Below, piece after piece: positions 5,701 through 41,364 of a stretch of 64,000 nucleotides of DNA. Under the pieces are notes generated by a model. It made no database searches and was not told where the DNA came from. It saw only the letters and a list, made by a program, of their open reading frames with translations. The translations under genes were made by a program, and so were the position numbers. The stretch is from Thalia democratica (Eukaryota): NCBI GenBank assembly GCA_965202585.1, contig OZ241830.1:72726001-72790000 (forward strand), given 5' to 3'. How positions within the stretch are numbered: the stretch's first letter is position 1; every line of letters begins with the position of its first letter.

Positions 5701-6178
5701 TAACCAGACAGTTTACAAAAAGTTATGAAGTGTTTAAATAATAAAAAAATACCAGTATTCCTTATCCCCTATAATCGACCTCACAAATTCGAGGATGTGC
5801 AATAGTTTTATTTATATACTTATTAAGTTAAGATTTCTCTTACAACTTATTCTTACTCAGGTCATAAAACAAGACTAAACTAAAACTTTAGAGCACTATG
5901 ATAAAATAAGTTTTTGTCAAGTAAGAAAATTTAATGAAAACAGTTAAAAAACGAACTGATTAAAATAATTTGGTTTTTGTACACGATTTGCAAAACACTT
6001 CAACATAATTTTGTAATCAATTAGTTGTCAACAGTAAAATAATGAAACAACATGCGAGTTTTCATTTAAAGTTTGAACAAAATTTAAATAGCTTGCTTTT
6101 TTACATAACAATCTATACGTTAAATTCTACAAACGAAAACTGTTAAAACCAATAATCACTCTTCACAACTGTTATCAA

Positions 6179-7486: not shown

Positions 7487-7769
7487 GATTTATGGTGATT
7501 TGCGAGATAAAAGTCAGGTTTCAATCAATTGGTTTATTATACAAGTACTGTTTATAACGCTGAAAAGGGGGATTAAGATTAAGCATTACAAAAAAAACTT
7601 TCTTTAATTAATTTAAAAAATAAGTTTTCTATGTTAAAAAAACACAATACCAACTAAAGTTTTAAATGTTCCAAAGTAATCGTTAAGTAATTAAAATTTA
7701 TTCACTACGCAGCACTGTAGGAAATGTTTACTTTTTTATACTTTACTAGATATTCTTATACACTATGTA

Positions 7770-10700
7770 ATTTACGCAATAGTAATGTAGTATTGAAACT
7801 AAACAATTATTTAATTAAACAAGCGTAAAATGTGTCAGTTCATTACTGTAAACATTTCAGCACATACCATTAAGTTTATATTATATAGTTTATATTTTTA
7901 TTTTACTTGTATATCAATATTCCATATACCAATAACATTAACGATAATTTTAAATCTTAATTGTTAAGACAAAGTTTTCTAAAACATATCTAGCTGCTAT
8001 GAATTTTTCAATTTACTTAGACTTAAGAAAAATAAAGTCAAAAATTTCAACACAAGTAAGCTGAGTTAAATAAATTTATTTAAACATTGAAACCATTGTA
8101 TTATTTTTTTCTATTATTTTTACGAACACCAACAATTAAACTTCCTCTTATTCCTAAAAAAAAATGTTAATAAGCATTAAATCAGATAACTGCTACTAAA
8201 AATAAATTCAATTTAAACGTCGTTATCTTTTATTAGTACTATTAACGCATGATTTTATTTTCATGTGAGAATGAAGCAAAATTATTCTAAGTACAACTCA
8301 CTCAGTGTCGAAGTAACACAGATAAATATTTCAAAAGCGCAGAAATGCAGACGTAAGCAACATTATATATAAGAATTTTAAAAAATCAAACGTTGTAGTT
8401 AACAAGCATTTTTTTACCACCTATAACAATTCATGAAGTTCTTGAACATAATAAAGTGATTTTTACTTTAACCATCATTTTGTCAAAAAAGAAAGTCCAA
8501 TCTTAATTTGATCTTTTTTCAACTTAAATACTTATTTTCATATAGTTTATTAAGAAAACACTTGTAAAATTATCTGCAAATAACTTGTGATGTAACAAAA
8601 AGAAAAAACTAAAAGGAATTGTACAATTATGTTGAACAAAAATAAAGTGTCAATTTAAGTTTTAAGTGTAGACATATTATAGAAAGATCAAGTTAATAAA
8701 AAGTATTTTTTATAGTTTTTACTTGAATATAAAATAATCAATGAAATTTATTAACAACTCATAAAATAAATAAAATACATAAATAAAGTAAAAGTTTGTT
8801 AACACTTTAAATCAATAAATACAACTGATTAATAACCAAAGGCAAGCAAAAGCAAACACATTGAAAGTAATCTTAATAATATGAGTATACATCATTTTAT
8901 CATAAGAAAATGAACAAATTTAAAAAACATATCTCTTTTAATTATAAACTTCCGGAAAACAAAGAGCAGTAACTTAAAACAAATCAACAATAAAGTTAAG
9001 TTTTAGTCTTTTAGCTTTTTTTTTGTTATTAACGATATTTACTATCCAAATAAACTATATAAACTATAAAAAGAATTTACTATGTTAAACATTATATTTT
9101 CACTAAGTGATCTGCATTTACTACAATATATTACACAAAAATAAAGTTACACCAATCTTCAAGAAAAAAAGGCAAGAAATAATATCTAGTAACTTGTAAA
9201 AATGTAAAACTGAAACATTACACTTGGTGTATAATTTATGGTTTTTTACAGTAAATTCTATATTTAAAATAGTATAACATACAAGAAATCATGTAAATAC
9301 TTGTATTACAAGTATAAAGCTGTTTCAAATATAACTAGCTGCTGTAATGTTTACTAAAAACAGTAAAAGAAAAAAATAGCACAAGTTAGCTCAGTAATTC
9401 ATAAAAAAATAACTATTCAACAGCAGTAACAATTATCATAAAAAATAGCACAAGTTAGCTCAGTAATTCATAAAAAAATAACTATTCAACAGCAAATTAT
9501 CTTACTTTCATATAATTTTTTTTAATCTCACTTAAAAACCTTATCAGCGAAGTTAAAACAAAAAATTTTTGTCCTTGTCAAACACGAGATAATTAAATTT
9601 TATCCTCCTTTTTTCAAATGACAAGTAATTTTTTGGGCCGATAAAAAACTTTTAAATTGAAATTTTTTCTTTTAAATTATGTGGTTTACCACAACACTTG
9701 TGCATAAAAAACTCTTTTATGGAAATACTTAAGTTTTTTTCTTACAATTTTTTATTAAAAGCTTTCCAATAGCAACTGCAGGCAACAAGTTTAAGTTCGT
9801 TGAACTTTTAAGAAAATTTAAAATGTTATTACATTCAAACACTTTTAATTTTGTTTGATTTGAAAACTAAATTTAGTTTTAGCTCAACTTTACTTCAACT
9901 AAAAAATCTAAAAAAAATTTTCCAAACAGATTTATAAAAAACTTTTAAAGTTATTCGAAACAGTGTTGAAAGTATAACGTACTTGAAACAAACTTGTACA
10001 ACTTTTGAAAAAAATGTAATAATGTTATAAGGTATTCTTTAACCTTAAGAAATTATATAAGCGATGATTTGAAAATACATTTTTCAAAAATTGCTAAATT
10101 ATTGCGACTCAATAATAATTAGAATGTGAAACCAAGATGTAGAAAGGTATAAGTAAACTTACGTTGTAAATAAAATCTTTATTATATACAAACAAAAATT
10201 ACATGCTTAAATATTACTGAAATTTATTATTTATATAAAACTGATTTATTTCAAGTTAAAAACCATCTTGTTTTAGAACTTTTTTTTTGTTGCTAATATA
10301 TGCATAAAAATTAAAGTATAAATAAAAATTGTAATAACTATATTGCTGTAGCTTTTAAAAACAAAAACAAACAATAAAAAAGCCTTAAAATAAGTTTCGT
10401 TAAAAAGTAAAACTAACTTTAAAATGCACCATTTAGTTTTTTCTTTGCATTCATTTTTGATAAAACAAAACAATTTTAAGAAAAATCAAACATATAATGC
10501 ATCACCGAATAAGAAATAAAAGTTGACCAAAATAATCTTAGATTTTTATCAGTATTTTTGTACTTATACTACTTTCTGAGAAAATAGCAACTGAACTCCC
10601 ATAACTTTGTTAACGAGCTGTTGAACAAAATACTCTTTTAATGCTTCAGAAACTCAAAACATAAATCTTTTACGAGCAAGCTATAAGTTTAAAAAAATAA

Positions 10701-13700
10701 AACAACACTTACAAACATATACGTCAGGCAGACTTGTTAAAATGCTAACAGTTACTATGGTAATTCAGCAATGAAGCCTATAAACTTTGGTTTGTTTTAA
10801 GTTAGTAATTTCACGCTCAAGTAAACAAAGCAGTGCTTTATAACATGTCTGACGTCAGGTGTAAGCAAGTTAAAATGCTGGTCTGGCATAACAACATAGT
10901 CATTTTGGCATGTCTGCTTGTAAGTAATCAGTTTTTATTAATTTCATTGCGAATAAAAACCAATTAAAAGTATTTGAACTTCTTGAAACCTTTAATTAGT
11001 TTTAACTTGTACCGGCTCAAAAACAAACTTAATTTCAGCATGAACTTTGTTTAACTTAAATTTGACCAAAATTTTTTTTTCGAGTAGTATCTACTGAAGA
11101 ACACTTGTCTGCAAACTATTTTTAGAAACAAAGTGATGAAATAAAAAACGTGGATAAAATTTTGTAGGGTGGTTAAACAAAGTTCAAAACAAAATTTGCG
11201 TTAAGAACACACTAGATATATTGAGAAAATCTTCCTTAAGTTTAAGTTTATACTTGGTGTCAAAAATCAGAGTAATTAACTTAATATTTATCAGTTACTA
11301 CATTTCAAACAATTTTGATACATGCAAAAAAAACAAATTGCATGCTTAAATCTATACTTCAACATTCTTTAAACAATTGAAAAATAGAACTGGCAAATTT
11401 TTACTACTGCAGGTTGAAAGAAAAACATTACATATTTCAAACTATATATCTTTAATTTATTTTCTTTTCTTATACATTTAGAATCAAAAAGAAATTGTAA
11501 TATCAATTTTAACATGAAATCTTAAAACCATTTTTTACTTAAAATAATAAATAAAAATTGTAAGTCTTTTACTATCTTTACATATAATATTTACTGAAAT
11601 AGAATTAAAAAATTGCTAAAAACCTCTTACAATAAACTAAAACAGGAGTACAAACAAATTAATATACATTTCATATTTAAAACAAATTCAAATTATCTTT
11701 TTTGTGTAATTGTAACATTATTAAAACATAATATTTTATTTTAGTTGTGTTGAGCTGAGTAAGAATAATTACAAAACATTTTGTTATTTTCATAACTTAT
11801 ATCTTCACTTTTACAGCTACTAAATAAACAAGAAAAACTAAACTAGTATTTTTTTAATTGCAAGAAAACTTACAAACGCTAAACAAGCATAAAAAAGTAT
11901 TACTTAAAAAAAAGTTAAATATAAATAAAACAACATTGTATTTAAAGGTAACTTTATAATAAACGTTTTTCACCAAAGCTTTGTCACAAACAAATGAGGT
12001 AATTTTGTACGTTTCTATAGTTAGCTGCATATTTGTGTTCTTAAGTTAATATAGTTTTATCTTGTGCACCAAACCTGCATTTTACGTAATATTTTTTTAA
12101 TACTTTGTAATTGTATTCTGTTGTACCAACAGAGAGAAAAAGTTTAAAATCAAACAAAATATTGTGAACAACATAATCACATAAGTTGTATATGTATGTA
12201 TTATTTTCAGTACTAAACCTTCAGTTTACATTGGTGTAATCTTTAGTTTATGTGTTCTAATAAGTCAACTCAAGAGAGGGACAAAGTTTCAAATCAAATA
12301 AGCCAGATTTGACAATATAACCAACACTAAAGACAAAAAAACTCATACAACTTGAAAACTTACACAACATCTTCTGTACCAAACTTTTAGTTTACCTTTT
12401 GTTCTTGTCCAAATGTTTGTGCACAAAGTAGAGTCAAAAAATCCAGATTATTATGAGAACATTATGTTATCAATAATGGTTTAGTTTGTTTTAAACTTTG
12501 AAACTCTTGTAAGACAAGTTATGAGAATATAAGTACAAAGTATTAAAAGAATATAATGTAAACTGCAGGTTTTGAGCACAAGTAAATAGATAATTATAGG
12601 ATTTATACTGGTTTTTCTTTTTTGGGTGTCAACTATGATCAATAACAGTTTATGTTATTTGAAACTTTGTCACCCTGTTGAGAGGACTCATGAAAATACA
12701 AAGTATTAAAACATATTATGTAAAATCCAGGTTTAGTGTACAAGGTAAAACTATATGAATATGAACATAAGAACACAAACATGCAGCTAACTATAGTTTG
12801 ATTTTCAAGCCGGCTTACTCCAAAAAAAAATTGAAACAAAACTTCTCTGTTAGAAGGAGTTGATATAAAAAAAAATGTTTTTTATCAAAATTTATCACAA
12901 AGATGTCACTTTTTGATTCGTAAAAACAATTCTGAGTGACCAAAATCTTCAACTGTCCTGATTAGTGATGTATTGGATCAAAGTATCTGGATCCAGAAGC
13001 ATAATTTCTTATGAATTCAGTTTTGGCCGGATCCTAATTTGAAAAACTACCTGGATCTAGTTAGATATTGATTTGAAAAAACATCTGAATCCATTTTGGA
13101 AAATAGTATTTGGATTTAATTGAGTTCTAATTTTGAAATATCCGGATTTGATAGATTGCTGAATTTACTTTACCTGTTTTAGTTCTTTACAGTGGTCTGC
13201 ATAGCTTGGTTGAAAAAAATACATATTTGAGGGGAGGTTTGAGTGACCAAAATGCCTTGACTCATCTTAAGTTTTTTAAAATTGAATTCTTCATCAAAGT
13301 TGGTTATTAAATTACAAAATACTGAAACTAAATCTCAATAAGTTATTTAAAATCATTAGAATCCTATCCAAATTTATATTTGTAATACAAGTTTATTAAA
13401 GAAAAATCCAATGTTTTTATCATATTTTATAACTTTTACTGAGGATATCAAGGTTATAATTTCATTGCTATTAAGAAAAATCCAGGGAAGTGGGAACCCT
13501 ATTTATTATTTGTAGTGCTATATTTAGTAATTAATTTAAAAAAAAGTATTTTCTTCTTAGTTCACAGCCTTTTTGGGAAATTTTAAGAAACACTAAGAAA
13601 TTTTAAAAGTAGTAGTAAAAAAAAAATTAAAATGCTTTTATATGATATTGGCCGACATTTTTAAGATTTAAGTCTTGATATAAAAGACAAAATGCATGAA

Positions 13701-15380
13701 AGTGTATGGGAAATTTATAAGCCTACAACTGCTATGCAATTTTCAAAAAATCACATCAATTAAAAACCAACAAATAATTAATACAATAACTTTGTAAGAT
13801 TAAACATGTTTAAAAAATAAAAAGTTTGTTTCATTACCTTAAATTTATTATTCAAAATCAAATATAGGTTTTAAATGTTAAAATTTATTAGAGCTAGAAA
13901 ATTTACTAATAAGTGTAAAAAAAAAAGTTTTTTTAGGAAAACTACAAAATTGACAAAAAGTAATAGTACAGCTTAGGTTAACAGAAAATAACTAACTACT
14001 GAAAACTTAATTACCTTCATCTCAGTTCATTTTGTTTCTCTAAGTTTATCAAAACTTTAAATTAGCCAGAGTTTTTAACTAACTACAAACTAACCTACCT
14101 ATCAGTAAGACAACCTGTATGTAAAATTTTAAGTATCACAATAACCTCTTTGTTTTTCAAGACAATTGAGTTTTTGGATTTTTTATAGTTTTAATTGAAG
14201 CTATGTGCAAAGTTAAGTTTTTAAAGTTTTTCTGGGGTTTATGTGGTAATGTCAGAATTGAAATGGAACTGAAATATCCTAATACCTGCTCTAAATTGCT
14301 TGTTTTAGGTAGGATTTTTTTTAAATGCTTAATTTCTTTGTTAATTGGTAATTTAAGGGATCGAAAATTTGTCACATGTAGATATGAAACATTCAATTTT
14401 AAAATTATATTATCAATTGAAATACTAAAACATATTTCAATTTAAAATTTAGTTTTTTTTATTTTATCTTTATGTTCACCTGCAAGAATTTAAAATTTTT
14501 CCATTACAATCCTATGCTAGCTAGCCACCCTGAAAACTATCAAACTTTTAGTTTAATCTTTAAAATTTAGTAATATTTAAGCATTATAAAATAACTTTAT
14601 GTAGTTAAGTTATAATGGAGCAAGGGTTTAGATTCTAAACATTTTTAATCAGTCTATGGATAGGAATTTACATGTTGAAATTGTAATGGACGATAAGATT
14701 AGTTTTTCTATTCCATAACAGGATGAAACACAAAAAAGTAAATTACATTTTATTGTACAGTATTTATTGGTCTGAAAAGAAACTCATTTGATTTTAATTT
14801 AACTGTAATTAAGTCACATAACTTTCTAGAACAAAAGAACTAATTCTATACATTGGGCATTACCCTAAAATAAATTGTGTTTCACCATAAATTTTTTAAT
14901 AAAACATAAAAAATTAGTAAAACTTAAAATGGTAGAAATAAGAATTAAAGTTTTTTATCTTTTTAACATTACTCGACAAAAGACTTAACACTTAAAGCTT
15001 CAATTCGAAAAACTACAACTAGAAAAAAAAATTAATTAAAAATTTCCTTTATTTCGGAAATTATTTCAATCACATTGCGCTATTTTAGTATGTATTGAAC
15101 TATTAAAAAGTTGTTATGATGCAAAACACAAATAATGAATTTGACTACTACATAATAAATTAAACCTTAGCTATAGAAAAAACTTTTTTCTTGATATTTT
15201 ATTCAGTTATAGAATTAAAAAAATTTTTTTTGATAAACTATACTGTTTGTTGAACGACAAATAAGCGCTCGAAATATTTGGTCCGATGACCTGGTGCACG
15301 AAAAAAGCTTTCAGTTATCTAGTCAAACACCGCTTGGATACCTTTTAATGTCTTGTTGTCCACGACAAATTTAATTAGAA
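7770..15380. repeat. Copy A of a diverged ~7.5-kb non-coding block, collinear with 33160-40990
   Basis: Collinear anchors: 7772 ttacgcaatagt~33164 ttacgcagtagt; 7982 aaacatatctagctgctat~33364 (same motif); 8250-8360~33655-33760; 10120 aattagaatgtgaa~34950 aatttgaatgtgaa; 10580 gagaaaatagcaactgaactcccataacttt~34530; 13310 acaaaatactgaaactaaa~38563; 13477 cagggaagtgggaacc~39610; 14850-14980~40230-40370; 15290 gacctggtgcacgaaaaaagctttcagttatc~40890. Confidence 0.7.
9372..9494. repeat. Short tandem duplication (~54-bp core, period ~69)
   Basis: aaaaatagcacaagttagctcagtaattcataaaaaaataactattcaacagca occurs twice. Confidence 0.9.
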
Positions 15381-18300
15381 TATTCAAAAAACACCAACAA
15401 AATATAAACCAATTATAAAAATATTACAAAACGACTACTTCAATTAATTTTATTTCTTATTTATTTTAGAGATTCAAAAAATAAAAATTCAACCTACCAC
15501 GCAACAGCTGTAAATAAACATCAAGTTTAAAATATGTTGCTATTCTGTCTAATTTTATGTCTATGATACGAGCTATGAAAACTATTTAAATAATTTATTA
15601 ACCATTTGGTATAATAGTTTTTATTATACAAGCCTTATACTTTTTTACTAGTTAATTTTTTTTACTTGTTTTTAGTGTTTAAATGTAGTTTGTAAACTTT
15701 AGCTAAGCTTTAATGTCTTAATAAATGTTAAGTTCGATTTTAAAAGAGTTAGAATTTAAAATTTTGGATAAAATTGATAAGGGGAAGTGCTATAGATGTT
15801 ACATATATTCTGTTGTATTATTTCTTAACCTCATTTACATGATACGATGACAGGAAAAAATCTAAACTGTCACTATTTTTGCTCGTACTTATACATTCTT
15901 ATGAGTTTGTTTATTTCTGAATATTATTAAGGGTAGTTTTAAAATCCTACAACTTAATTGCATATTTGCTAAATCAACAAAAATAATATACATTTTATTT
16001 ATTATACCCTTATTCCTGACCCACTTAACCTAAACATATAACAAATAAATCTAAAAAATAATTAACATTTAAGATTAAATCTAATATAAATAAAAAACTT
16101 TTTTTTTCTGACTCGGCAAATGTGCAAATGATTTGCTAGTTTTCAAGCTTCCCTTAATCAACTAGTAGCTACCTGCGTTGCAAACTTGGGAAGTCCCCTT
16201 AGATGTAATGCAAAGCAAACATTAAAATTTGTTCAATATTATCACCTTAATTGACTTTGACCCAAAAAATTTATGACCTGTAATAGCATTTATTGTTGCA
16301 TACTTGCATAAAATAACTGAGTAGGTATGCTTGTAAGTTTTTGAAACAATATATGCTTTTTTGCTAAATTGAATATATTTGTTTCAATTAAACTTGCTTG
16401 AGGATTTGAGTTTAAGGATTTACCTTAACTTTATGGTTTTTAATGTCAAGATTTTAATTAACCTTACAAGAGTTTTCTAGATAACAAGCCACTGAGATGT
16501 TTTGTGTTTTCAAATGATATTTTTCTTTGCTTTGTTTATTTGTAAGTAAGTCAAAGTTTATCTTTAACGTGAGGTAAAATTAAACATGATGAAACTTGTT
16601 TGCATAACTCTCACATAAGGTTTATTGTTTAGTAATAAAAGAGTTAGTGATGATGTTTTCTTAGTTTTAATTTAAAAAAATTTATACTTTTTTTGTTAAG
16701 AAAAACCTGGCATTTGAAAGTTTAAAAAATATAAAAAAGTCTTGAATTTTGAACAACTTTGCTTAAAAATAATATAATTTATGATAGATGAAAAATAACA
16801 TTGCACACAAGATTTAAAATGAAAAAAAAAAAACTGAGTTGTGTAACTAAGTAACCTATTTAAAGTTTAATAGTAAAATTCTAGAATTTATCATATATGT
16901 TTAGAAAATCAACAATACAAATCTTGATTAAAAAAAACAAAACTTATAGTGCTAAGTCTACTGCAAATTGTGCTAAGATATTTGTTTAAGTTAATAATTT
17001 TAAAGACATCACCCTAATTTAGCTTAATGAACTATGTATTTACCTTTAGAAAAAGAAAAAAATAGTTATGCTTATACTTTTTTTTTGTTTCAATGAATTT
17101 TTTCTTTACAAACTAAAACAAAATATGTTTATTTAAAAATGTGCACTGGTTTAAAGACAATTTTGAAAAATAAAAGTTGTTTTGAGGTTTTAATTACAAT
17201 CAACTCTTGCAAATCTACACACTTATTTGGTTACACACTTTAGAACTCTCAAAAAAGTTTAAAAAATCTTTAATATTAACATTTTTCTGTGTATAGAGTT
17301 AGAAATAAATTTAAATTTTTATATATCATTTTAAATGCTAATATAAGAGAAGAAGGATTGTTGATAAAATTGATATTTTTGCATATTTAGTTTGTGCCTT
17401 TAATAAAAACCTTCTGAACTCTATGGCTTTGCTCTTTATTTTTTAGATATCTTTTTCCCCCTTTATAACTTTTAATCAAACAAAGTAAAACTTTTAATTT
17501 ACTGAAAATATTTATGGCATAGAGTTTCATTTCTACTCAATAAATCTCTTATTTTTAGCTAATTTGTTCCTTGCCCAGCTAAAAACAGACTTTTTTTGCA
17601 TGGTGTTAGGGAAAGATCTTTTTCACTAATACTATGTAATACAAGCTTAATCTTAGGTGGGCAAGGAAACAGTAAAAAAAAAACATTTTGTATACACATT
17701 AGAAATTTTTATTAAAATACTTTTCACTTTTATATATAATTTGAATTAAAAATGTTTTTATAAACAAAAAAGTGGAAAAGCCCACAAACTGTATTTAATC
17801 AAGTCCATTATAAGAAAACAGCCCAGCCAATGTAGTAGGTATATTACATACCTCTTGTTTAGTTATTTCTCTCATTTATTTACGCTTTTTTGCTTTGGAC
17901 ACAATATGCGTAGACTTGCAAGAGGTGACTGTAATTTAAGCTAGTTTGTAGTCACTCACTGTACTAAGATACTTGAAAAAAACATGGAATAAAGTTTCAA
18001 AAAAAAAACAATGGCTACTCGGAGTTGTATGTACTTTATTACTTTATTTAAAGTGAACTGATGCTCTTTTTTTTACATTTCTCTTAATTCAACACTTTTG
18101 GTAAATAAAAGTTTATGCATTGCTGCTAGCTTTGCTAAAATATTTATAAAAAAACTGTTTTTTTCACAGCTTAATGTAACAAAAAGTGTGAAAATGTATT
18201 TACGTTTCAGCTCTTAGTGATTTAAAAATAAAGTGTAAGTACTTGAAGGCCAAAAGCAGTTGTCTTCTGCATTTAAAATTAGTTGTTCACAGTAGATAAA

Positions 18301-18811
18301 TTAATTTAAACTCAAAAGGTTTAAGTGTCTCGGTAGTTGCATGACAAAAAAACCTTTTTTAATGATGCTGTAAAATGAAGCAAGACTCTGATTTTGCATA
18401 AATGTTAAATATTTTAACTTAAAATATATTTTTGTGCATACTAAAATATATTAAATGCACATAATTTTAAAATATTTATTTTTTCTTTTGAAACAAATTC
18501 AAGCTCGCTAAAGTCAGTTTTTTTTTTCCTCAAAGAAAGGCAAACCTGATGTAAATACTTTGACCTAGAAGTTTAAAAATATTTAAATAAAAAAAGAGAA
18601 ACACGTCAGTTAGTAATTATACTAATATCATTAGCCATAAAGTTTTTTTCATAAACTCAGAGTTTTTAATAAAAATTGCAAAACCTTTGAACTTAATAAA
18701 GTTTGATAATTGATTAAATAGAACTGTAAATTATTAAACAAAAACTATTTGTGTTAGTTTGAAATATACGACTCATTTATACAGACTTAAGTATTTAGTA
18801 GAAATATAGCA

Positions 18812-31500: not shown

Positions 31501-31726
31501 AAATTTATGAACATAATTAAAGTAAAATAGTATTTATAAGTGTACTTATGAATACTCTTTACTGACTGTAAATATAAAAACGTTATCAGGATTTTTTTGA
31601 AGACCAACCAGAAAAACCTCCCTAAATACGTAGCAATCAAATGAACCGTACATTTTTGTTTTTAACAAAAAAACTTTACAATGTTGCCATATTCCTATCA
31701 ACATTAAGCAGTAAAACGCAAGCAAG

Positions 31727-32812
31727 TTATTTACTCATTTCGTCAAGGTACCAGCCTGGCAAAAAAGCGTTTGCAGAATTTTTTTCGAGTTTCATTTCAA
31801 CAAAATCACTTTTAAACTCCCAACTCACCACGCAGCAGGTATCGATCTCGTCAACATTTTCCATCGCCTTCACAATTTCCCATAAAACGTTCCCAGTGAA
31901 CCGGACGCACTTTGCAGGGCTCCAAGGGAAACCCTCTAAATGCTGCCTAGCTAAACTTGGCAGCTCACCGACTTCGAACTTCTCAAGTGACCTGACCAGT
32001 CCCTTTTCGTCTCTGAACCCGCAAACTATAGCTGGTGTTCCGCTCAAATAAGCCTCAAGCCACCAATTTAGCAACTTACTGCGAAAAAAAAGTTGCTCTT
32101 GTTTGAAACAAGTCATAATTTTGGTCGTTTTCAACTCGATATGGTTAGCCGGAGAGCCAATAAATCCCTTACCCTTGTCCACACAGTCAATTTGTGTCCC
32201 GAAAATTATCGGCAAATTGTCGCCGAATCGGGACGAAATTACAGAAAAATATGCTTCTTTGGTGTTGACCACCCTCTCTTGCCGTTTTTTGACGTCCATT
32301 TTCGTGTCGTTGCACGGTGCGGTCACGTACTTTTCAAACTTGAGGCCCCAATATCGGTGCGGTTGGTACTGTAAACAGTCGTTATCAGGCGCATGTATGT
32401 CATTCAAGTAAACTACTCCTTTGAATTTCTGCGCTACCAGCACCCATGAATTTCTTGTCTCGTAGTTTGTGCGCATCAGTTTATCTAGACATCTGCGTTT
32501 TGTCACTATCTGATTCGTCGAAGGGCTGAATTTGTCTCTGTTCGCCAAAATCCAGTTCAGCATGGTTCGGAGCCGGCCCTTTTGGTTGGGGTCTCTTATT
32601 ACGAACTGTGTTCGGAAACCGTGATTCAGGTCGAACGGTTCATCGAGGACGATTCGCTTCCAGTCGTTGCGTTTTGTTTTCGGCGGGGCAAAGTAGCTCA
32701 TCTCCTGGTTGCTGTCCCTGAACCTTTGGTTTTCGTCGGTTGAGAACCTGCCCACTTCAACCGGCTGCTGGTACGTCTGTTTTTTCTCGTTGAGTTCTTT
32801 TATGCTGAACAT
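31727..32812 (-). CDS. DXO: Intronless DXO/Dom3Z/Rai1-family decapping 5'-3' exoribonuclease-like protein (361 aa), divergent active site
   Basis: Motifs VGRFS..., RRCLDKLMRTNYE, YWGLKFEKYV, VNTKEAYFSVISSRFG, FGTQIDCVD, IELKT and KLLNWWLEAYLSGTPAIVCGFRD align in order to the DXO motifs WRGHLTKLLTTPYE, YMGYKFEQY, VNTNVAFCSVLRSRLG, FSGEVDC, VELKT and KLLKWWAQSFLPGVPNVVAGFR. Candidate acceptor tttcgcag ends 9 nt before the ATG. May be a paralog rather than the ortholog. Confidence 0.88.
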   Translation of the reverse strand: MFSIKELNEKKQTYQQPVEVGRFSTDENQRFRDSNQEMSYFAPPKTKRNDWKRIVLDEPFDLNHGFRTQFVIRDPNQKGRLRTMLNWILANRDKFSPSTNQIVTKRRCLDKLMRTNYETRNSWVLVAQKFKGVVYLNDIHAPDNDCLQYQPHRYWGLKFEKYVTAPCNDTKMDVKKRQERVVNTKEAYFSVISSRFGDNLPIIFGTQIDCVDKGKGFIGSPANHIELKTTKIMTCFKQEQLFFRSKLLNWWLEAYLSGTPAIVCGFRDEKGLVRSLEKFEVGELPSLARQHLEGFPWSPAKCVRFTGNVLWEIVKAMENVDEIDTCCVVSWEFKSDFVEMKLEKNSANAFLPGWYLDEMSK

Positions 32813-35612
32813 TATTTAAATCTGCGAAAGTATGTGTTGATTTTTAACTCAAAAACAAAAATTTCTTAGCTAAAAATATCAAAAACTTAAAACTTTACAA
32901 AATTCCAAAAACAATTAAGCTTGTTCTACATTTTGAACAAACTGTTTGATTCCGGTTCTTTAACTTAGACCATTTTTTTCAAAATGTTGATTTTGGTTAT
33001 GAGGAGGTGATAAAGTAAATGGGTAATCGACTAGTAAAGAAGCGGTATATAATAAATAATAATATTATTTTTAATTCTACCAAGGAGCTGATTGTGAACC
33101 TGCTATTTTAGGAACTATTCAAATTTTACTTCTTTGTTCGATTTTTTATGCTTATTAGTTAGCTTACGCAGTAGTTTATCTAAAAAAATAAAAAATTATT
33201 ATTAAATTACACAAACAAGAGAGATACCAGTAAATTACTGTATATGTTTAAAAATATAAATAATACCTAGTTTTTGTTTTATGTTTTCTTACCTAGTAAT
33301 TTTTTTTTAACAAATAGCATTAATTTGTAGAAACATTTTGGGATTGAAAGTATAATGTTTATAAAACATATCTAGCTGCTATAAAATTTTTAATTTATTT
33401 AAATTCAAGCAAAAAAAATATGTAAAAGACTTTAATAAAAGTAAGCTTTGTCGAAATGATATTATTTACAAGCTTCAAACCGTAGTTTTACTTTTTTTCA
33501 AATTTTTTATAGGCGAGTTTGAAAATGTTATAACTACCAAACATTGTCTTATTTCTTTTTTTTAATTATAAGCTTTAAAAATAAAACTTTTTACCAACAG
33601 TAAGTTTAAATTATACTTAAACATCAATATGTTTCATAACTAACAACGATACATGGTTTTTATTTTCATTAGATAACAACAAAGTCGTTTATACGAGTTA
33701 TCACATGACTCAGTAGTAAATTAACACAGTTTGTTCCTTCAATGCTGTAGAAATACAGACAAAAGTAATACTTAGAACAAGCAACTTACCAGTTTGAAAT
33801 ATTAATATCAAGCTCAAATTTAAATCAAAGAAAAACTATATAATGACTTTACTTGTAAAGCTTTTAAAAAACATAAATTGCAATTAAATTCGAACAATAC
33901 TTGAATTTTCACAATGTTCACCATCCAAATAAACTGAGCAAAGTAGCAAGTGGTCAACAGAAAATTTTCAATTTGATTATGCATTCACGATAATATATTA
34001 GTAGGTAAAAAACAAAAAAAATCTTCAAAAAAAACGATAGAAATGAAAACTAATAACTTTTAAATAATGAAATTGATAAATACTTTATGTTTTTTTTTCA
34101 GTAAAATTACTATTATTATTACAAAATATGTAATTCGAGTTATTGTTTGTAGTACTAGTTTAAAGTTTTTCATAATCTATCTAGCTATTGTAGTATTTTT
34201 AAACATCAAGAAAAAATTGATAAAAAATCTAATACTAGTAACCTCATTAACTTATTTGTAATAACTAGTACTACATAAACTTACCTTAAACAACATTTTT
34301 TTTTCATTTTAAACTACTTATAAAACCTTCACGTTGAAATTGTTATTAGTGTAATGAAAGCTTTTAGTTTTTTTATTTGTCAAATTTGTCCACTTCTTTT
34401 TACATTGACAATGGACATGAAATTTTAAAGCTCTAAAACTAGATTTATATGATACAACCATAATAAAACACTTTTACATCTTCCGAGTATTTGTTAAACC
34501 ACAACAATTACCGTTTCTTTTGTAATTTTGAGAAAACAGAAATCAACTCCCATAACTTTATCAATAAATAATTTCATAGATAACTCTTTCAACATTGCAA
34601 AAATACGCAAACTTTTTTCAACATTGCAGAAATACGTAAGTTTGTTTCTTACGTAAGCAAAAAGCTTTTAAACGATAATTTTAAGTATAGAAGTTTAAGT
34701 AATTTATTTGCTAACTAAAATCTAAAAGCTTTTGTAACTTTATTTAATTTTTGTTTCAAAAAAACTTTGTTTAGTTTAAATACTTTCAACTTATTTTCAA
34801 CTCTTTTTAAAAGAACACTTGTGAATTTATGAGCAAACAACTCATAAAACAATTTAATAAAGCCATAATTATTTCTAAGTATCATTTTTTAATAAGTTTG
34901 CATAAACGATGTCTTAAGTCATATTTAAATTTGATAAAGCTCAAAAATAATTTGAATGTGAACCAAAAATTTAAAGCACTATTTTTATATAACATTAACT
35001 AATTTTTTCTGTAAAACAACTGCTGTTTTTCAGCAAAAATCGTAGCTAACTGGATTTTAACTCACTTTTATCACAAAACAGAAAACCTTAATAAAAGTTG
35101 TGTTTAAAAACTTAGATTTTTTAATATATATGCTTAGACTTAACAAAAAGTATAACAACTTTACTTGTTACTTTTAAAAGAGAAAAATTGTAATAATATT
35201 TTTGAACTGTATTTTATTAACAACTAATCTACTTCCTTTGAAACAATTAAAAATAAAATACGCATTACATAAATGAAATTCATATTCAATAAAACTTTTT
35301 AACCATTTCATTAGTATATGTTGTACTAAAAACACATAATTTTTTTATTACTCAGTCAGAAAACAGCAACTAAACTCCCAACAAGATATTTAATATAAAA
35401 AATCTTTCAGTACTTCATAAATTTGACAACCAAGTTAGTTACAATATTTTTACAAGCAAGCTAGTATTTAAAAAATTTAAACCAACTCTTATAAGTAATC
35501 AAGTTTGTAACATTTAATTGCAGATAAAAAATTAAACTTCTTAAAATTTTGAATCGATAAAAATGCAAAGTTTAAACTTAACTTGAACTTAAATTTACCT
35601 TAAGGTTTAAAA

Positions 35613-36314
35613 TAGGGGTGGGCAACGTTTTTCAATCAACGAGCCGGATCCGGATAAATTAAGTCTTTTGCGGGCCGGAGCATTTCGAACTAGTGATTTA
35701 CCAGATCCAGTATCTGGATCCAGCCGAAATATGGATTTTTTGATCTGAATCCGACTGGATACTAATTTTAAGTCGAGGTCAGGATCCGGTCGGATTTTAA
35801 TTTTTTTAAAAGTTTTGGATCCGGCCGGATTCCAATTTTATAGATACAATTGATCACTTTTTTGAATCCTTCAAATTCAGAAAAATTTCTCAAGTCTGAC
35901 AACTTAAGATGTAGATTGAGACGTGTCAGATGTTTAAATAATGTCTATAAATAGAATTGACATCGTAATTGACAAATATCGTACTTTAAGAAATACTTTG
36001 CTTGGGTTAATTTGGCACAAAGATATTCCAACTAAGTTAGAAAAACACAAAATATTAGGACAAAATGGTGTATTTATTGGTATACATTAATTAATAAAGT
36101 CATTTTTTAGCATCTTTTTAAAGTCAAATTCTTACAGTTATGTTTTGAAAAAGTATTATAAAACGTTTTATGATACTTTTGTAATATTAACCCTTCGCGG
36201 ACTTGTCACTTTGCTCGCGGGCCGGATCCCATTAAAGTTAGAAGACGGTCGAGGCCGGTCATTTTCACTCTGCGGCCCGGATCCGGCCCGCGGGCCGTAC
36301 GTTGCTCACCCCTA
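35613..36314. mobile_element. hAT-type non-autonomous element, 702 bp, 8-bp TSD GTTTAAAA
   Basis: TIR taggggtgggcaacg / cgttgctcaccccta; gtttaaaa on both sides; subterminal gcgggccggatcc repeats; carries an internal GGATCC-rich MITE remnant. Confidence 0.88.
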
Positions 36315-38798
36315 GTTTAAAACTTCTCGATTATTCTCTACAGTAAAATTGTAAAATTATTGGCAAACACTTTTTACAACAAAAAAAAAACATAGATAAA
36401 ACTTGTTTGTTAATAGTTAATTTAAACTTGTTTAAACAAAACATTTAAAATATTTGGATACTTTTCTCTAAGCTTTAAATATTTAGTATGTGATTCCAAA
36501 AGTTACAGTATCTAATTTAATAAAACTCGTTAGAATTCTGATTAATGCAAAAAATAACAAAATGCATTCTTAAACTAAATTTCAACATCTGAAAAATAGA
36601 GCTTGGAAATCAAAATAAATCAACTGTTTTAATTTTTAAGTTTACAATAATGCTTTTAACGTTATAAATCAAAAATTCTATACTAATCTTCTCTTTTTAA
36701 TTTCTAAAAAAAAAAAGAAGTTGTAAATTCTAAGATGTAAACTTTGAAGCAACTTTTTACTAAATTAATATAACATAAGTTTTTTGATATATTTGCTTCA
36801 CAAAAAACGTTTATTGTAAAAACAAAACACAAACAAAAGACTAGCACAATTTTTGCAATAAGCCAAAACAGGAATATAGACTTTACATTGTTTTATATTT
36901 AAAACCAATTTAACCTCTTTTTTCTAAAGTAATTCAACGTGTTGTTATTGTAAAACTTTATATACTATTTTAAATCAATATCAAAACCCTTTTGCTTTTT
37001 TTCATGACTTATATCATCTGCTATACAGTTACTTGATAACTAAGAAATACAAAGCATTTTTAATGCAATGAAATAAACAAACGTAAACTAAATATAAAAA
37101 CTGTATTACTTAAGTAGAATAATAAGTGAATAAATAAATGTTGAGTCGGAAATAAATTAACTAAAATTTTAAGACAAGTTATGCATTTTTTTGCTTAGAT
37201 GCATTCACCAATTTTTCGCCACTTTTAGCGCTATAGAGCAAAACTTTCCAATCGAAACGGGTTCTGACTCTCGTTGAATTTCAGTTACATATTGTTAAAT
37301 TCAGCATTATTATTCAATACATAACAACATTGTAAACAAATAAAATTAGCCCTAGAAATAATGATTAATGACCTTTATACAAACTTTCAAACAGAAATAC
37401 AAAATGATTTTTAGTTTACTACCAAGAGCAAATTTCTTACTCTTAGCTTGAAAACAAAAAGTAACCAAAATAAATTTAAAAAAATGTTTACAATTGTAAA
37501 ATCAAAAAAGGTGTAAAAAAAATTAAAATTTTCAGGTGAGTTTATAAACATAAGATCTATGGACCATTTTATTTATTTGAATTTTTTTAAATTTTAATAC
37601 TATTAATAAAAATAGAAAATAAAACTGAAATTCAAACGAGAATCACAAATCTTCCAATTTGTGTGAGTGCAACAAAAATTAAAAAAAAAAATTTAAATCA
37701 AATATGTATTAACTATAGAATTTTCTAGTGACTTTTAAGCTTCGACAATCATTTTAAATATAATACTTTTGTTTGTTAATATTAAAACTCCAAAATCATT
37801 ATTTTACGAACTTATAGTATATCAATTGACAATATTAGTAAGATCTTCAGTTATAATACATAACTAAAAATCAAAATAAACTTTTATTGAGAAAGCTTAG
37901 CTTAAGTTTACAATTGTAATTAAACGCATATAATCTGGTAAAGTTATAAAAAAACTAATGAATACTAGTAAAAAGCTTAAGGCTACTATTACTAAAACTG
38001 TTATACAAACTTGTTTCCAAATTACTTTAAGTAAGTAAAGCTTGTGAGTTAATAAACCAACCGTAAATCAATAAATTTGAAACTTTCTTCTTTGACAAAC
38101 TGTTCCTAGGTTCTTGGACCAAATATTTTGACGCTTTTCTATTTTTTTTATCGCTCAATAAACAATTGGATGCAAGTTAGAAATGTCGATGTTGAATGAA
38201 AAAATAGTATACAACATGAAAATTTATTAAGATATACTAGGATTTTAATAAATAAACTTTTTGTTTTAACAATTTAAAAACATATATTTATTTAACACAT
38301 AGTATTAGCTTTAAAACATAACCTTTAAGTTAATCAATTCTAAAAATATTTAACTTTATATCTGATATCATAGTTAAACTAATTAACTTGAAAAAAAAAA
38401 TTACAGTAAATACTTATTACAAAGTTGCCACTCTTTGATCTGTCTTAGGTGACCAAAAACTGTCCTGACTATCCTGAATTTTTCCAGATCCGCAAAAATA
38501 TTTTTTTTAACTTACAAAATCAATAGAAATTAAATTCATCAACATAACTGTCTATAAACTACCAAAATATTGAAACTAAACCAACTAAGTCTCTTTAAAG
38601 GTCTTAGAAAAATATTATAAATAAAATACAATAGTTTACAACAATCAAAAAAAAAAAACTTAAAGTAAAAATATTGATGTAAAGGTACCACCAAGAGCTC
38701 ATTTAGGGTCACACTAAACTTCAAAAAAAAAAACAAGGAGACTGCTTGAAATTAATTCTATCTACTATAAGGACAATTTTTTTTATCTCTATCTACTA

Positions 38799-39005
38799 CA
38801 GTGTTGCCACTTTTTAAATGTCATTCAAAATTTATAAAAAAACTGGTGTGAGACTTTCAAATATTGTAACACTAACATAAGTTTTACTGAAATACTATAC
38901 TGGCCTGAGTAATCCTGAGTTGAAAAAATCAACTAGCCTGAGTTGACCTGAGATTTACAAATATTTCAAGCTGTCATGAGTTATACCAAGTGTGTGGCAA
39001 CCTTG
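38799..39005. mobile_element. MITE of the CAG(G/T)GTTGCCAC family
   Basis: Starts cagtgttgccac and ends gtggcaaccttg; TSD unclear. Confidence 0.6.
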
Positions 39006-41163
39006 CTATTATCTTTATTTTTACCTAAAAGTTTCAAAACGTTTTCAAGTTAGTTAAGTTACTATAAAAAATAAAATTTACTTAACAATTTTGGTGCACA
39101 AGACTTTTCTTTTATTTATATACTGTGAACACAACTTTTAGAGTAAGAGAACTACTTACCAAAACTTCTGTTTGCATTCATCTCATTTAATAGCCGCTAA
39201 ATAAGATATTTGTTAATACCATATTTTAAGTTTAACTTTAAAAATAAAACTTGCTTTCCAATAAGATAACTTTTGTAGTTTTCATTCAAAAAATTACAAA
39301 ACTTTTTAAACTAAGTACAGGTTCAGAAATTAATCACATAAACACAATAAGACACAACTGAAAAGCTTTTGAAATGATTATAAAAGTCTTAACCTCATAG
39401 TTTACAACTCAAAAAATTATAAAAAAATCATCATGAATAACAATATATGATAAGCTTGGTCCATTCATAAGCAGAAAAAAAAAGTAAAATTTAAGAAGAT
39501 CCACTGCTTTTCAATTGTTTTTACAATTTATATACTTTAATATCTAGAGAAAAGTAATGTTTTTTTTATTAGCTTTAAAAAATAATGTGTAGGTATATTT
39601 AAAATAAACACAGGGAAGTGGCAACCTTGTTTCGAATATTTTAAATATTTAACTTTAAAAAATGCACCTTAAATACTGTTATTTCAACAGCTCTTCTAGG
39701 AATTACCATTTAATAATAATGATTAAATTTTAAAAACGATGAGAAATAATAAATGAACGCTGGTTGCATTGAGTTTGGAAAACATTTACAAGATTTAAGC
39801 CTAAATAGAAAAGTAAAAAATAAATGAATATGTATTGGAAAAATATAAGCCTAAAACTGTTTTGTAACTTTGAAACAAAGTTGATATTGAATGATTTGTT
39901 TTCTAACCATTTAACACAGTATCAACATCCAAACTCCTTTCATTTCAGTAGAAATGAAACTTTAGTTCTAAATCCATTTAAATTTGCATAAACAAGTATC
40001 CCATTACACTATTACAGGGTATAAAATTATATACTTAATAACATTTCATTACATGTGTACTCATTAATATAAACAGCAGCACACTAACTTGAAAATCTTC
40101 ATTAATTTTTCTCACAGAATTCTCTAGGATAATACAAATTCTATTAGATTAAATATTGCTGTTTGATACTACGTTCAGCTGTGAAATTTAATAATTGACT
40201 GGATTTGTAATAAAAAATAAAAATTTATTATGTTACATGGGTATTACCCTATTATCGTTTATGTTTCACTATAATTTTTTTTAATTATAGAAACAACTGT
40301 TGGTAAAACTAAAAATGTAGAAATAAAAAGAAAAATTTTGTAGAGTTTTAACATAACTCGACAAAAACTGATTGCTTAAATTTAAACAAAGTAACAGAAT
40401 ATTGATTATAAAAATACTTGCGTTTGTCATTTTGCAATATAAGTTCGTTTATTTACTCGTATATTAATCATATGAATCATATCATATAAGTCATATCATA
40501 TGACATTATAAAAGTATGTGTTGAACTTTTAAAATTCATATAGATAAAATTCCATTTTTTTTATTGATAACAAACTAAATTTAAGCTTCAAATAATAGTA
40601 AAAAATAATTATTTTTTAATTGCAGATTTTTATGATAGTTTTATTTCAACACTTGTCGTTCAATCAATAAGCACATAAAAGGTACGTAGGTCGTAGACTG
40701 AGTATAACTTTACTAGCAAATCAAAAATTTTAATTTTGAAGCATCTTTTTTTTTTCAACACTTAAAGCGTTTTTTTAGTAAACAAGTTTAAAAATATGCT
40801 TAGCATTTTCTTTCATTGTACCTTCAAAGTTATCTAAAATTACAATATAATTGTTTATTGAAAAATTACTTTCAAAAAGTTTTGTCCAAGGACCTGGTGT
40901 ACAAAAAACCTTTCGGTTATCGAGTCATACACCCGAACAGTTTAACGTCATGCCCAGGACAACGAGAAAACAAATCACGATTTTATATCTAAATAATTTG
41001 GCAGCGATGTATATCACTGAAAAGTTGAATTATTTACAAACATTTGTTTGTTTTATCTTAAAGTTTTAAAATTCTCGTGTAATTTTTTGAAAAAAAAAAA
41101 ACTAAAATAACCGGTTTTTAAATTAGGTGATGACTTCACTTACAAAACAATAAGTACGGCTTG

Positions 41164-41364
41164 TATACTTAAAGATCAGTCTGAGCTGAAAAAAGCTTAG
41201 TCAGCAAAAAAAAAAAATTATTTATAACTTTATTTATTTGAACTTTATTTTTTGATTAATTTTTTATACGTTTAGTTAGGGATAAGGGTATAAAAAATAG
41301 TGTAAAAAAGGGCTATACAATTATTGACTGAGCTTTTTTCAGTTCAGACTGATCTATAAATATA
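41164..41364. mobile_element. Palindromic MITE (~200 bp, possibly TA-flanked Tc1/mariner-type)
   Basis: tatacttaaagatcagtctgagctgaaaaaagcttagtca pairs with tgactgagcttttttcagttcagactgatctataaatata. Confidence 0.7.

Follow-up and report, generated by a model that had tools for sequence, protein, structure and literature searches.

The window analyzed here, a single 64-kb stretch of genomic DNA, raises the question of how two unrelated intronless ORFs, one derived from a viral nucleoprotein gene and one of DXO type, came to lie within copies of the same flanking DNA. The origin that we favor, with a probability of about 0.62, is an ancient segmental duplication of the whole DXO locus in which a viral gene replaced the coding exon of one copy. 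A sequence-only reading of the window had already offered this origin as the first of two, in which the ORF of a duplicated DXO locus gave way to a viral N cDNA, and the proposal has been strengthened by paralogous sequence found to bracket both ORFs.

The minus-strand ORF at 31727..32812 (361 aa, one exon) is predicted to encode a DXO (Rai1/Dom3Z family) decapping exonuclease, in agreement with its first identification. It matches the Pfam RAI1 family over model positions 1-332 of 333 (E = 6.7e-73, 246 bits) and solved DXO structures over residues 14-360 (1e-46), and the nuclease motifs KFE.Y,.DC. and ELKT are kept in the full-length alignment. The orthologue in a sister species is 82% identical. 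The ORF lies in exon 2 (31454..32821, minus strand, 3' end approximate), which starts 9 nt before the ATG, right after a tttcgcag acceptor. Upstream of it are a GT...AG intron of 1463 nt (32822..34284) and a non-coding exon 1 (34285..34389), also on the minus strand, whose approximate 5' end is the start of cDNA contig L010 from the sister species. This contig jumps from a stretch matching window positions 34387-34297 (82% over its nt 4-91) to the base after tttcgcag, and the joined exon model agrees with its nt 1-142 in 115 of 149 columns. From the start of exon 2 onward, and only there, L010 matches the sister genome (L009, L003) along with the window. At the points of the jump, the window has a canonical donor (AAG/GTAAGT) and acceptor (CAG/), and the sister cDNA contigs end opposite window positions 31454 (L010) and 31498 (L011). 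Exon 1 is single-copy in the window, and intron 1 is conserved at 77-83% with sister loci L009 and L015. The acceptor that the sequence-only reading had noticed before the DXO ATG is real and is used in L010. The promoter, 5'-UTR exon and long intron which that reading proposed stand in part: DXO does have a non-coding exon and an intron, but exon 1 lies at ~34.3 kb, 1.46 kb upstream, and not at ~40.9 kb, 8 kb upstream. Because the leader exon is this close, most of the shared block lies upstream of the DXO start site and not within a long intron.

The second ORF (6179..7486, minus strand) is intact and encodes 435 aa. Its residues 125-378 match model positions 35-290 of 293 in Pfam PF03216, Rhabdo_ncap_2 (E = 3.1e-12; 47 bits, curated cut-off 25), which bears out its designation as viral-N-like, and the relatives P0001, P0002 and P0013 have the same precomputed Pfam match. 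PDB searches with the single sequence and with a 4-sequence profile returned no relative, and the nucleoproteins of vesicular stomatitis and rabies viruses were not among their results; the AlphaFold model is all-helical, with a mean pLDDT of 42 that is too poor for a fold search. Residues 1 to ~66 consist of 17-aa acidic/aromatic repeats that are absent from 46%-identical relatives, and a 51-nt tandem repeat lies within the ORF at 7343-7472. The gene is a non-retroviral endogenous viral element, that is, a viral gene in host DNA without the other parts of the viral genome: DXO and an enoyl-CoA hydratase gene of several exons lie in the same 64 kb, no further viral-like ORF of at least 150 aa was found in the window, and orthologous loci are present in other taxa. 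The GC profile places the ORF in a GC-rich island (0.48) of about mRNA size at 6101..7576 (minus strand), which is probably the extent of the virus-derived insert, and a short A-run (6 nt) lies ~70 nt past the stop codon. As signs of retrotransposon-mediated cDNA integration (poly(A) tail, target-site duplication), this A-run and an 8-nt AT-rich direct repeat at the slot borders do not exceed chance. An intact 435-aa orthologue, 96% identical, occurs on two metagenome contigs (L001 and L002), giving a dN/dS of 0.36-0.38 between the window and these contigs (32-33 substitutions; P ~0.004-0.009 against neutrality). The orthologue on L012 is a pseudogene with 2 stops, 7 indels that shift the frame and 3 that keep it. 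The 46%-identical relatives are intact and transcribed in a distant species; their relation is one of sequence likeness, and orthology is only putative. The N-like gene is thereby a candidate, at most, for a viral gene domesticated under purifying selection.

Self-BLAST of the whole window returned six same-strand, collinear matches between DNA at the N-like gene (copy A) and DNA at DXO (copy B), confirming the two collinear diverged copies of the sequence-only reading. These pair 7718-8122 with 33109-33509 (62%, E = 8e-24; anchor 1), 11311-11938 with 36534-37143 (62%, E = 9e-16), 13279-13361 with 38527-38609 (73%), 13582-13750 with 39709-39878 (68%, E = 4e-19), 14827-14996 with 40211-40380 (73%, E = 6e-21) and 15247-15331 with 40851-40933 (76%), at A-to-B offsets of 25.2 to 26.1 kb. 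The last of these islands reaches 15354 in copy A and 40950 in copy B, and beyond it a rightmost island (16015-16065 with 41458-41508) was the best of 5000 diagonals. The upstream side thus spans 7693..16065 in copy A and 33095..41508 in copy B (both minus strand), past the ends that had been placed at ~15380 and ~40990. Homology had also been said to start 280-350 nt upstream of the ATGs; it starts slightly closer, at ~210 nt in copy A (near 7693-7718) and ~285 nt in copy B (near 33095-33109). MAFFT extends anchor 1 to ~8390 on the copy A side; on the copy B side, anchor 1 lies within DXO intron 1, from 33095 to ~33800. Together with a patch on the 3' side, there are eight islands of 61-77% identity, each single-copy in the 64-kb window, and copies A (5950-16065) and B (31347-41508) are old collinear same-strand paralogues. 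Judged by these several collinear, same-strand, single-copy matches, the pair would qualify as a segmental duplication.

Could independent dispersed repeats, or AT-rich stretches of low complexity, instead have produced this chain of matches by chance? The alignable share is ~1.7 kb, or ~20% of the block outside the slot that holds the ORFs, and ~80% is at background identity. In a global MAFFT alignment of A and B, column identity was 44.9% against 43.0% for an unrelated control, and only 16% of 100-nt windows exceeded the control's 99th percentile. The rightmost island and the 3' patch are short (51-61 nt, 70-73%) and owe their support partly to collinear position, and the element at the far end of the block, perhaps with the core of the 14827-14996 island, recurs in other contexts in a distant species. 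Such a chain is nevertheless very hard to reconcile with single E-values as low as that of anchor 1, with control regions that yield no comparable matches, and with islands on one strand and in one order, for which the chance is ~2e-7 with eight independent elements. Dispersed repeats proper have 3-5 copies in the window, whereas the A/B pieces have no further match in the 64 kb, and the chain of high-copy repeats that the sequence-only reading had set against itself is not supported. Anchor 1 moreover has clear A-type and B-type orthologues in other taxa.

These orthologues also date the duplication relative to related taxa. In a five-way alignment, anchor 1 groups by copy, as (A_window, A_L012) against (B_window, (B_L009, B_L003)), and the A-B distances (0.43-0.64) exceed the distance of B_window from its sister (0.38); the duplication and the N-like insert therefore predate the taxon splits. 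The N-like gene lies beside an A-type anchor 1 in another taxon as well (L012). The search for block copies covered the 64-kb window and ~60 kb of related contigs; in scans of JGI metagenomes, a single additional far-end element turned up, and no N-like relative.

The 3' flanks of the two ORFs had been described as lacking similarity. A paralogous patch is present there, however, in which positions 5950-6010 of copy A match 31347-31407 of copy B at 70% over 61 nt (E = 1.7e-5, offset 25397). None of the other diagonals among 5000 scores as well (36/50 matches; the mean is 26.0 +/- 1.6), and a three-way alignment with sister locus L003 suggests a weak extension to ~6085 and ~31480. On copy B, the patch (31347..31480, minus strand) straddles the 3' end of the DXO transcript; on copy A (5950..6085, minus strand), it is paralogous to the DXO transcript end and the DNA just beyond. 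The offsets on either side of the ORFs, 25397 at the 3' patch and 25391 at anchor 1, agree within 6 nt. Since the 3'-side homology lies at the same offset, the unrelated ORFs share one slot of ~1.6 kb in a duplicated DXO locus, and this slot is equal in A and B to within ~6 nt despite its unrelated contents. A tblastn search traced neither protein in the other copy's slot and found no second N-like or DXO copy in the window. Given the gene model from the spliced cDNA L010, the homologous region of copy B is exactly the DXO transcription unit plus upstream DNA, with most of intron 1, exon 1, the promoter region and ~7 kb further upstream on the far side of the slot.

We propose that a local segmental duplication of the whole DXO locus, roughly 10 kb, came first, and that the unit would have comprised ~100 nt past the transcript end, exon 2, intron 1, exon 1, the promoter and ~7 kb further upstream. 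Its copies would be the two blocks that today share one orientation at a spacing of 25.4 kb, of which B is the working DXO gene. In copy A, a stretch that began with the last ~270 nt of intron 1 and reached almost to the end of exon 2 would have given way to a GC-rich insert of mRNA size, with its rhabdovirus-type nucleoprotein ORF oriented as DXO is. Capture of a viral cDNA at a break, together with loss of the redundant DXO coding exon, would be the likeliest route, and both copies would later have drifted to background similarity except for ~8 islands. We infer both the direction of events, with DXO ancestral and the viral gene as the newcomer, and the mechanism of replacement. Two observations pull the other way. 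Equal slot length is not predicted by insertion plus deletion and would be either a coincidence of ~1% or the trace of a mechanism not yet thought of, and the intronless DXO coding region could itself be the newcomer.

In a different history, the duplication would have left two paralogous sites without a gene, which were then filled independently at one preferred target position, one by a DXO retrocopy and the other by a viral N cDNA, with DXO later recruiting its leader exon. In its favor, both slot contents are intronless, GC-rich and mRNA-sized within AT-rich DNA, the slots are nearly equal in length, and short direct repeats lie at the slot borders (an 8-mer in A and a 7-mer in B). DXO also has a different neighborhood in a distant species, where it lies 266 nt after a PSMD9-like gene that has no homologue in the window. 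The border repeats are, however, too short, AT-rich and not above chance: three shared 8-mers are at chance level, and a 10-mer was shared in 71/500 shuffles. DXO has no poly(A) tail behind it, 272 nt of the B slot belong to a functioning intron, and hitting the same nucleotide position twice requires a site-specific mechanism, none of which is known here. We consider independent filling improbable and retain the replacement of the coding exon in a duplicated DXO locus.

The second origin offered by the sequence-only reading was a large element with ORFs as cargo, so that the block would be a Helitron, Maverick or other cargo carrier that picks up ORFs and was inserted twice. Unrelated ORFs at the same position between related flanks would suit such a carrier, as would the far-end element, a conserved non-coding unit of ~95 nt at 15263..15354 in copy A (nhmmer 1.9e-25) and 40864..40950 in copy B (1.1e-22). 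This unit contains a short palindrome, has no Rfam match and is found at other loci and in other species: both copies were aligned with L005 and L007 (85% over 62 nt between copy B and L005 11299-11360). In a distant species it lies 330 nt after DXO and also flanks the N-like gene on its downstream side, and in L013 its context is unrelated. The far ends of the block had been taken for a promoter or first exon on account of their conservation and GC content. They are indeed the best-conserved islands and mildly GC-richer (0.34-0.35 against ~0.24), but the element recurs elsewhere and is no promoter or first exon peculiar to the two genes. Its occurrence without the remainder of the block also speaks against a mobile block, and no terminal direct or inverted repeats (LTR, TIR) were found at the block ends. 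The blocks have no transposase, reverse-transcriptase or integrase ORFs, their ORFs of at least 70 aa have no Pfam match, and tblastx gave no strand-specific coding signal or coding conservation. Identity of 61-77% confined to islands would mean very old, inactive copies, and copy B amounts to DXO itself together with its intron, leader exon and upstream DNA, collinear with sister species. A twice-inserted cargo carrier is thus very improbable, and the duplicated DXO locus remains our preferred source of the flanks.

Within that duplicated locus, copy A might still work as a shared cassette, keeping a DXO-type promoter and leader exon spliced to a candidate acceptor at ~7557; the N-like gene would then be expressed like DXO, and co-regulation would be possible. 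The N-like gene lies inside a paralogous DXO unit in the same orientation, with intron sequence upstream and transcript-end sequence downstream, and exactly this layout is used by DXO itself. The candidate acceptor, a pyrimidine tract followed by cag at the 5' edge of the GC-rich island, is plausible and conserved in L001, L002 and L012. At least two taxa have an intact ORF, at the dN/dS given above, and EBLN/TMEM106B provides a documented precedent. Against this, no counterpart of DXO exon 1 and promoter is detectable in collinear copy A (local score 17 against a null of 16.2 +/- 3.2, positive control 50), which, at this degree of divergence, is not proof of absence. Similarity to exon 1 and promoter does not rise above background elsewhere in the window, exon 1 is not among the conserved islands, and no AG/GTAAG-type consensus donor lies near the collinear copy A position ~8919. 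The only N-like transcript available, L004 from a distant species, is collinear with its genome and unspliced over at least 158 nt of leader; the contigs that carry close N-like orthologues are unspliced genomic DNA, and a transcript that joins the block to the N-like gene was not found. The L012 orthologue is a pseudogene despite an upstream flank that is ~89% conserved. The shared cassette by which the sequence-only reading explained N-like expression is thus only putative in copy A, and we regard it as unlikely, though it keeps some weight. For transcription of the N-like gene today, we would by a small margin favor a start site within the proximal ~300 nt over the former promoter and leader exon of DXO type, which may nonetheless have driven the gene on its first arrival.

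In the boldest version of this history, which we consider a long shot, the viral gene would have been slotted, span preserved, into the coding position of a second DXO transcription unit instead of merely landing in a dead duplicate, and DXO-type signals would still direct its transcription and processing. If this were true, an RNA 5'-end surveillance nuclease would be expressed in the host together with a virus-derived RNA-binding protein, the two forming a paired module that persisted beside DXO in zooplankton lineages with DXO proteins of only ~50% identity. The distant-species far-end element, which follows DXO and also flanks the N-like gene, is a lead for such persistence.

Among known situations, ordinary tandem or segmental duplication with loss of one copy likewise leaves same-orientation blocks, here 25 kb apart and decayed to islands. 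The locus differs in that the place of the redundant coding exon is held by a foreign intact ORF of almost the same span. DNA close to a retrogene can supply it with a promoter, introns and 5' non-coding exons, and DXO resembles such genes with its intronless coding exon, non-coding leader, 5'-UTR intron and acceptor a few bases before the ATG. Two unrelated ORFs that share flanks are, however, unpredicted by a retrogene model alone, and DXO as a retrocopy is only putative. Endogenous elements derived from rhabdovirus-like nucleoproteins are found in arthropods and other animals (e.g. PMC2987831). Like them, ours is a lone N-type ORF without adjoining viral genes, intact in some taxa and decayed in others. 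Such elements usually appear as insertions scattered over the genome, in many cases within piRNA clusters or repeat-rich DNA; ours differs in occupying the coding slot of a duplicated host gene and in its new repetitive N-terminal extension.

The closest precedent appears to be a viral nucleoprotein fossil in a partial duplicate of a host gene, namely the afrotherian EBLN loci, which took up a duplicate of part of TMEM106B (Kobayashi et al. 2016, PMC4982594). There, exon 1, the donor and ~450 nt of promoter are recognizably homologous, spliced transcripts, protein and promoter activity have been demonstrated, and the insert is marked by target-site duplications and a poly(A) tail; what the viral gene is proposed to have gained is a promoter, leader exon and splice donor already in place (PMC4982594). 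A host-derived exon 1 of this type was found neither in the collinear A region upstream of the N-like ORF nor in the rest of the window, and the collinear site has no consensus donor. In both systems, an intronless, mRNA-sized nucleoprotein ORF of a negative-strand RNA virus lies downstream of host-gene-homologous sequence (first exon, flanks and intron in EBLN), and the host gene survives elsewhere. Our locus is similar to this known route by which viral fossils take over the scaffold of a host gene, with promoter borrowing today as a candidate only: it is in the leader exon and promoter that the viral copy shows no detectable conservation. The virus family here is rhabdovirus-like and the host gene is DXO. 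Unlike at EBLN/TMEM106B, the homology brackets the viral ORF on both sides, and the whole host gene was duplicated, not its 5' part alone.

The window is very AT-rich (GC ~25%), with few GC-richer islands, and it holds two ORFs of more than 150 aa, both on the minus strand. The first (6179-7486) encodes a 435-aa rhabdovirus-nucleoprotein-like (N-like) protein matching Pfam Rhabdo_ncap_2 above the curated cut-off (E 3e-12). The second (31727-32812) encodes a full-length, 361-aa DXO/Rai1 protein (Pfam 7e-73; solved DXO structures 1e-46) in which the nuclease motifs are kept. All relatives of the two proteins came from marine plankton metagenomes and metatranscriptomes, mainly Tara Oceans. Between the two loci, on the opposite strand, lies a multi-exon enoyl-CoA hydratase gene (20511-26284). 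Its exon at 20511-20747 adjoins a 161-nt satellite (19251-20569; 8.2 copies, 94% identical) whose unit includes the initial ~30 coding bases of that exon, indicating that the 5' end of the gene was tandemly amplified; another partial copy of the exon end is found near 20872-21012. GC-rich, coding-looking pieces at 1-351 (plus strand; 117 aa, stop-free at the window edge) and 2318-2803 have no Pfam match and are probably exons of a neighboring gene.

Whole-window self-BLAST detected six collinear matches on the same strand between 7718-15331 and 33109-40933 (62-76% identity, E down to 8e-24), bearing out the sequence-only reading that two diverged, collinear copies lie here. Each of the six pieces is without any other match in the window, in contrast to the genuine dispersed repeats found there. 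A yardstick for the latter is a short, SINE- or MITE-like family (27275-27515, 43689-43817, 48728-48941, 56581-56814 and 58537-58747; 66-80% identical) that is common to the window and a distant species (contig L005, 3285-3572). Position-aware tests added a short island at either end of the blocks (A 5950-6010 / B 31347-31407 and A 16015-16065 / B 41458-41508), each being the top-scoring diagonal among 5000 tested and lying inside the collinear band. Copy A, with the N-like ORF, thus spans ~5950-16065, and copy B, with DXO, ~31347-41508. A chance chain of repeats could in principle produce such a series, but a common order and strand for eight independent elements is expected by chance at ~2e-7 and the six self-BLAST pieces are single-copy, leaving this explanation next to negligible. 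The sequence-only reading had also offered a large mobile element that captures ORFs as cargo; neither terminal repeats nor transposon proteins were found for the blocks, and we regard such an element as very improbable.

The likeness of A and B is confined to the islands. Global alignment of the blocks gave 44.9% identity vs 43.0% for the control, ~20% of the block is alignable, and k-mer diagonal counting (k=11) is insensitive at this divergence. Coding signal was absent from the islands by tblastx, and the idea that they are exons from a duplicated protein-coding gene was rejected because the matches were short, favored neither strand and were broken up by indels. The 'GGGTATTACCC' core of the island at 14827-14996 was likewise discarded as a recurrent promoter motif, as it occurs only in both copies and once in L005, the remaining weak matches being AT-rich noise. 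Copy A alone carries an inverted-repeat cluster (12015-12796, arms 72-77% identical), which probably stems from the later insertion of a foldback or MITE and explains part of the drift in A/B offset. Elsewhere in the window, a 3-kb inverted repeat (47219-50168 / 57286-60257; 93.5% identity) is much younger than the A/B duplication and contains no recognizable protein.

The A/B offset drifts by 170-900 nt elsewhere in the block, but it is 25397 at the island 3' of the ORFs (the 3' patch) and 25391 at the island on their 5' side (anchor 1; A 7718-8122 / B 33109-33509). These two offsets indicate that the unrelated ORFs sit at one and the same place (the slot) within a duplicated segment, at ~6086-7692 in A and ~31481-33094 in B. 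The slots, ~1.6 kb each, are equal in length within ~6 nt despite their unrelated contents. The 3' flanks had earlier been described as lacking similarity, which the 3' patch contradicts, since homology lies on both sides of the ORFs. A tblastn search detected no DXO remnant in the A slot; nor did it find N-like or DXO a second time in the window. The A slot holds a GC-rich, approximately mRNA-sized insert (6101-7576) with a short A-run past the 3' UTR; the 5' edge of the insert carries a pyrimidine tract together with cag. Short AT-rich direct repeats are present at both slot borders in either copy. That two empty paralogous sites were filled independently, one with each ORF, is improbable.

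The structure of DXO was read from contig L010 (a JGI sample), which carries the gene of a sister species (82% aa identity). Its match to sister-species genomic contigs L009 and L003 begins just 5' of the ATG, and its first ~108 nt were not found within 1.5 kb of upstream genomic sequence in either. This leader matches window 34387-34297 (82%), and at the two jump points the window has an AAG/GTAAGT donor and, on the acceptor side, tttcgcag/ATTTAAATA-ATG; the coincidence of jump, donor and acceptor identifies L010 as a spliced cDNA. On the minus strand, DXO therefore comprises a non-coding exon 1 (~34389-34285), a GT-AG intron 1 of 1463 nt (34284-32822) and an exon 2 that starts at 32821, 9 nt 5' of the ATG. 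The spliced cDNA confirms the tttcgcag acceptor predicted before the DXO ATG and moves the leader exon, which had been placed at ~40.9 kb, to 1.46 kb upstream. Anchor 1 is intronic in DXO, and the sister cDNA contigs (L010 and L011) end opposite window 31454 and 31498, respectively, within the 3' patch. From this exon-intron map and the cDNA ends, block copy B corresponds to the transcription unit of DXO without the slot, its promoter region and ~7 kb upstream. In the distant species (L006, 2461-8655), DXO is the third of three intronless genes arranged head-to-tail, after a 973-aa WD40 protein and a PSMD9-like gene, with intergenic gaps of 266 nt to 1.3 kb that are much more compact than the window; neither neighbor is present in the window.

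The position in copy A collinear with DXO exon 1 is ~8919-9022. Comparison of DXO exon 1 and core promoter with A 8600-9400 gave a local score of 17 (null 16.2 +/- 3.2), vs 50 for an anchor 1 piece of equal length, and no AG/GTAAG-type donor occurs near ~8919-9022. With the score at the null and the donor absent, the leader exon and promoter are the sole part of the proposed cassette (promoter, 5' UTR exon and long intron, with a swapped coding exon) that is not recognizably shared. Given the deep A/B divergence, this comparison weakens the view that both genes still run on a working shared cassette, which we consider unlikely. The cassette idea stands for DXO, with its leader exon, intron and acceptor, and is unsupported as a present-day arrangement for the viral gene, for which it is plausible as a historical route to expression.

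The best-conserved piece of the block is a non-coding, ~95-nt element near its far end (A 15263-15354, B 40864-40950). It had been likened to a promoter or first non-coding exon, but it is not one that belongs to these two genes alone: it recurs in L005 (11277-11372, at 5.6 kb downstream from an N-like gene; the DXO of this species has only 51% identity), in L007 of the same species (2269-2359, 330 nt downstream of DXO) and in L013 (3162-3254, an AT-rich contig where it adjoins unrelated repeats). The element contains a short palindrome and is 72-85% conserved across species with DXO proteins 51% identical, exceeding the conservation of coding DNA. No Rfam match was obtained at gathering or at E<=10 and no tRNA was predicted, and folds of the alignment showed neither compensatory changes nor covariation support, so the element was rejected as an RNA gene of known type or a tRNA-like unit. 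A spliced-leader RNA gene was also dropped, as the leader of the DXO cDNA comes from a cis position 1.46 kb upstream and the element occurs in no transcript. An overlapping ORF (40851-41069) was rejected as a ribosomal L19 exon (Pfam E 0.015, below cut-off; copies differ by indels).

Two genomic contigs (L001 and L002) are 96% identical to the window, collinear over 6080-7924, unspliced, and keep the 435-aa N-like ORF intact. Against these, the window gene has a dN/dS of 0.36-0.38 (18 non-synonymous vs 14-15 synonymous changes; P 0.004-0.009). In another taxon, the orthologous locus (L012; 82-93% nt identity, with an A-type anchor 1) has an ORF broken by seven frame-changing indels, three in-frame indels and two stops. 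The patch at 7694-7842 (94-98% identical between window and L012) was rejected as an N-like promoter, since the whole locus is ~90% identical and the L012 copy is a pseudogene. The distant species represented by L005 has an intact N-like ORF of 384-386 aa (46% identical); a transcript-like contig, L004, from the same source sample as spliced L010, is collinear with this genome over a leader of at least 158 nt, with no acceptor at its start. L005 shares no flanking genes with the window N-like locus and does not overlap L007, and no further N-like loci were found in JGI metagenomes or IMG/VR. Residues 1 to ~66 of the N-like protein are new N-terminal 17-aa acidic/aromatic repeats, encoded by a 51-nt tandem repeat (7343-7472), absent from the 46%-identical relatives and predicted to be disordered. 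Sequence searches found no relative with a solved structure, and the predicted model (pLDDT 42) was too poor for a structure search.

Aligning anchor 1 five ways separates the A copies (window, L012) from the B copies (window, L009, L003) as two groups, with A-B distances of 0.43-0.64 vs 0.38 between window B and its sister. By this grouping, the duplication and the arrival of N-like beside an A-type flank both predate the anchor 1 taxon splits. The blocks are best explained by an old segmental duplication of the entire DXO locus. We infer that in one copy a viral nucleoprotein cDNA, in the same orientation, took the place of the coding exon and the last part of the intron, the direction of this replacement included.

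How a promoter-less RNA-virus cDNA turns into an expressed host gene is a long-standing paleovirology question, and few loci reveal the route. DXO is an RNA 5'-end quality-control enzyme, so a functional pairing with the N-like gene would be biologically suggestive. If the N-like gene uses its own proximal promoter, the locus would be an old segmental duplication of the ordinary kind whose dead copy holds a viral fossil, and no new principle would follow. The clearest route so far is that of the elephant EBLN/TMEM106B locus, where a partial host-gene duplicate gives promoter, leader exon and donor, and the N-like/DXO locus would add an independent second case. RACE and promoter assays showed that bornavirus-like N elements of Afrotheria became transcribed through capture of a partial TMEM106B duplicate, with homologous promoter, exon 1 and donor (PMC4982594). 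Both cases place a viral nucleoprotein gene in a host-gene duplicate; the present one differs in its rhabdovirus-like virus, its AT-rich marine plankton animal and its whole-gene duplicate with the coding exon replaced.
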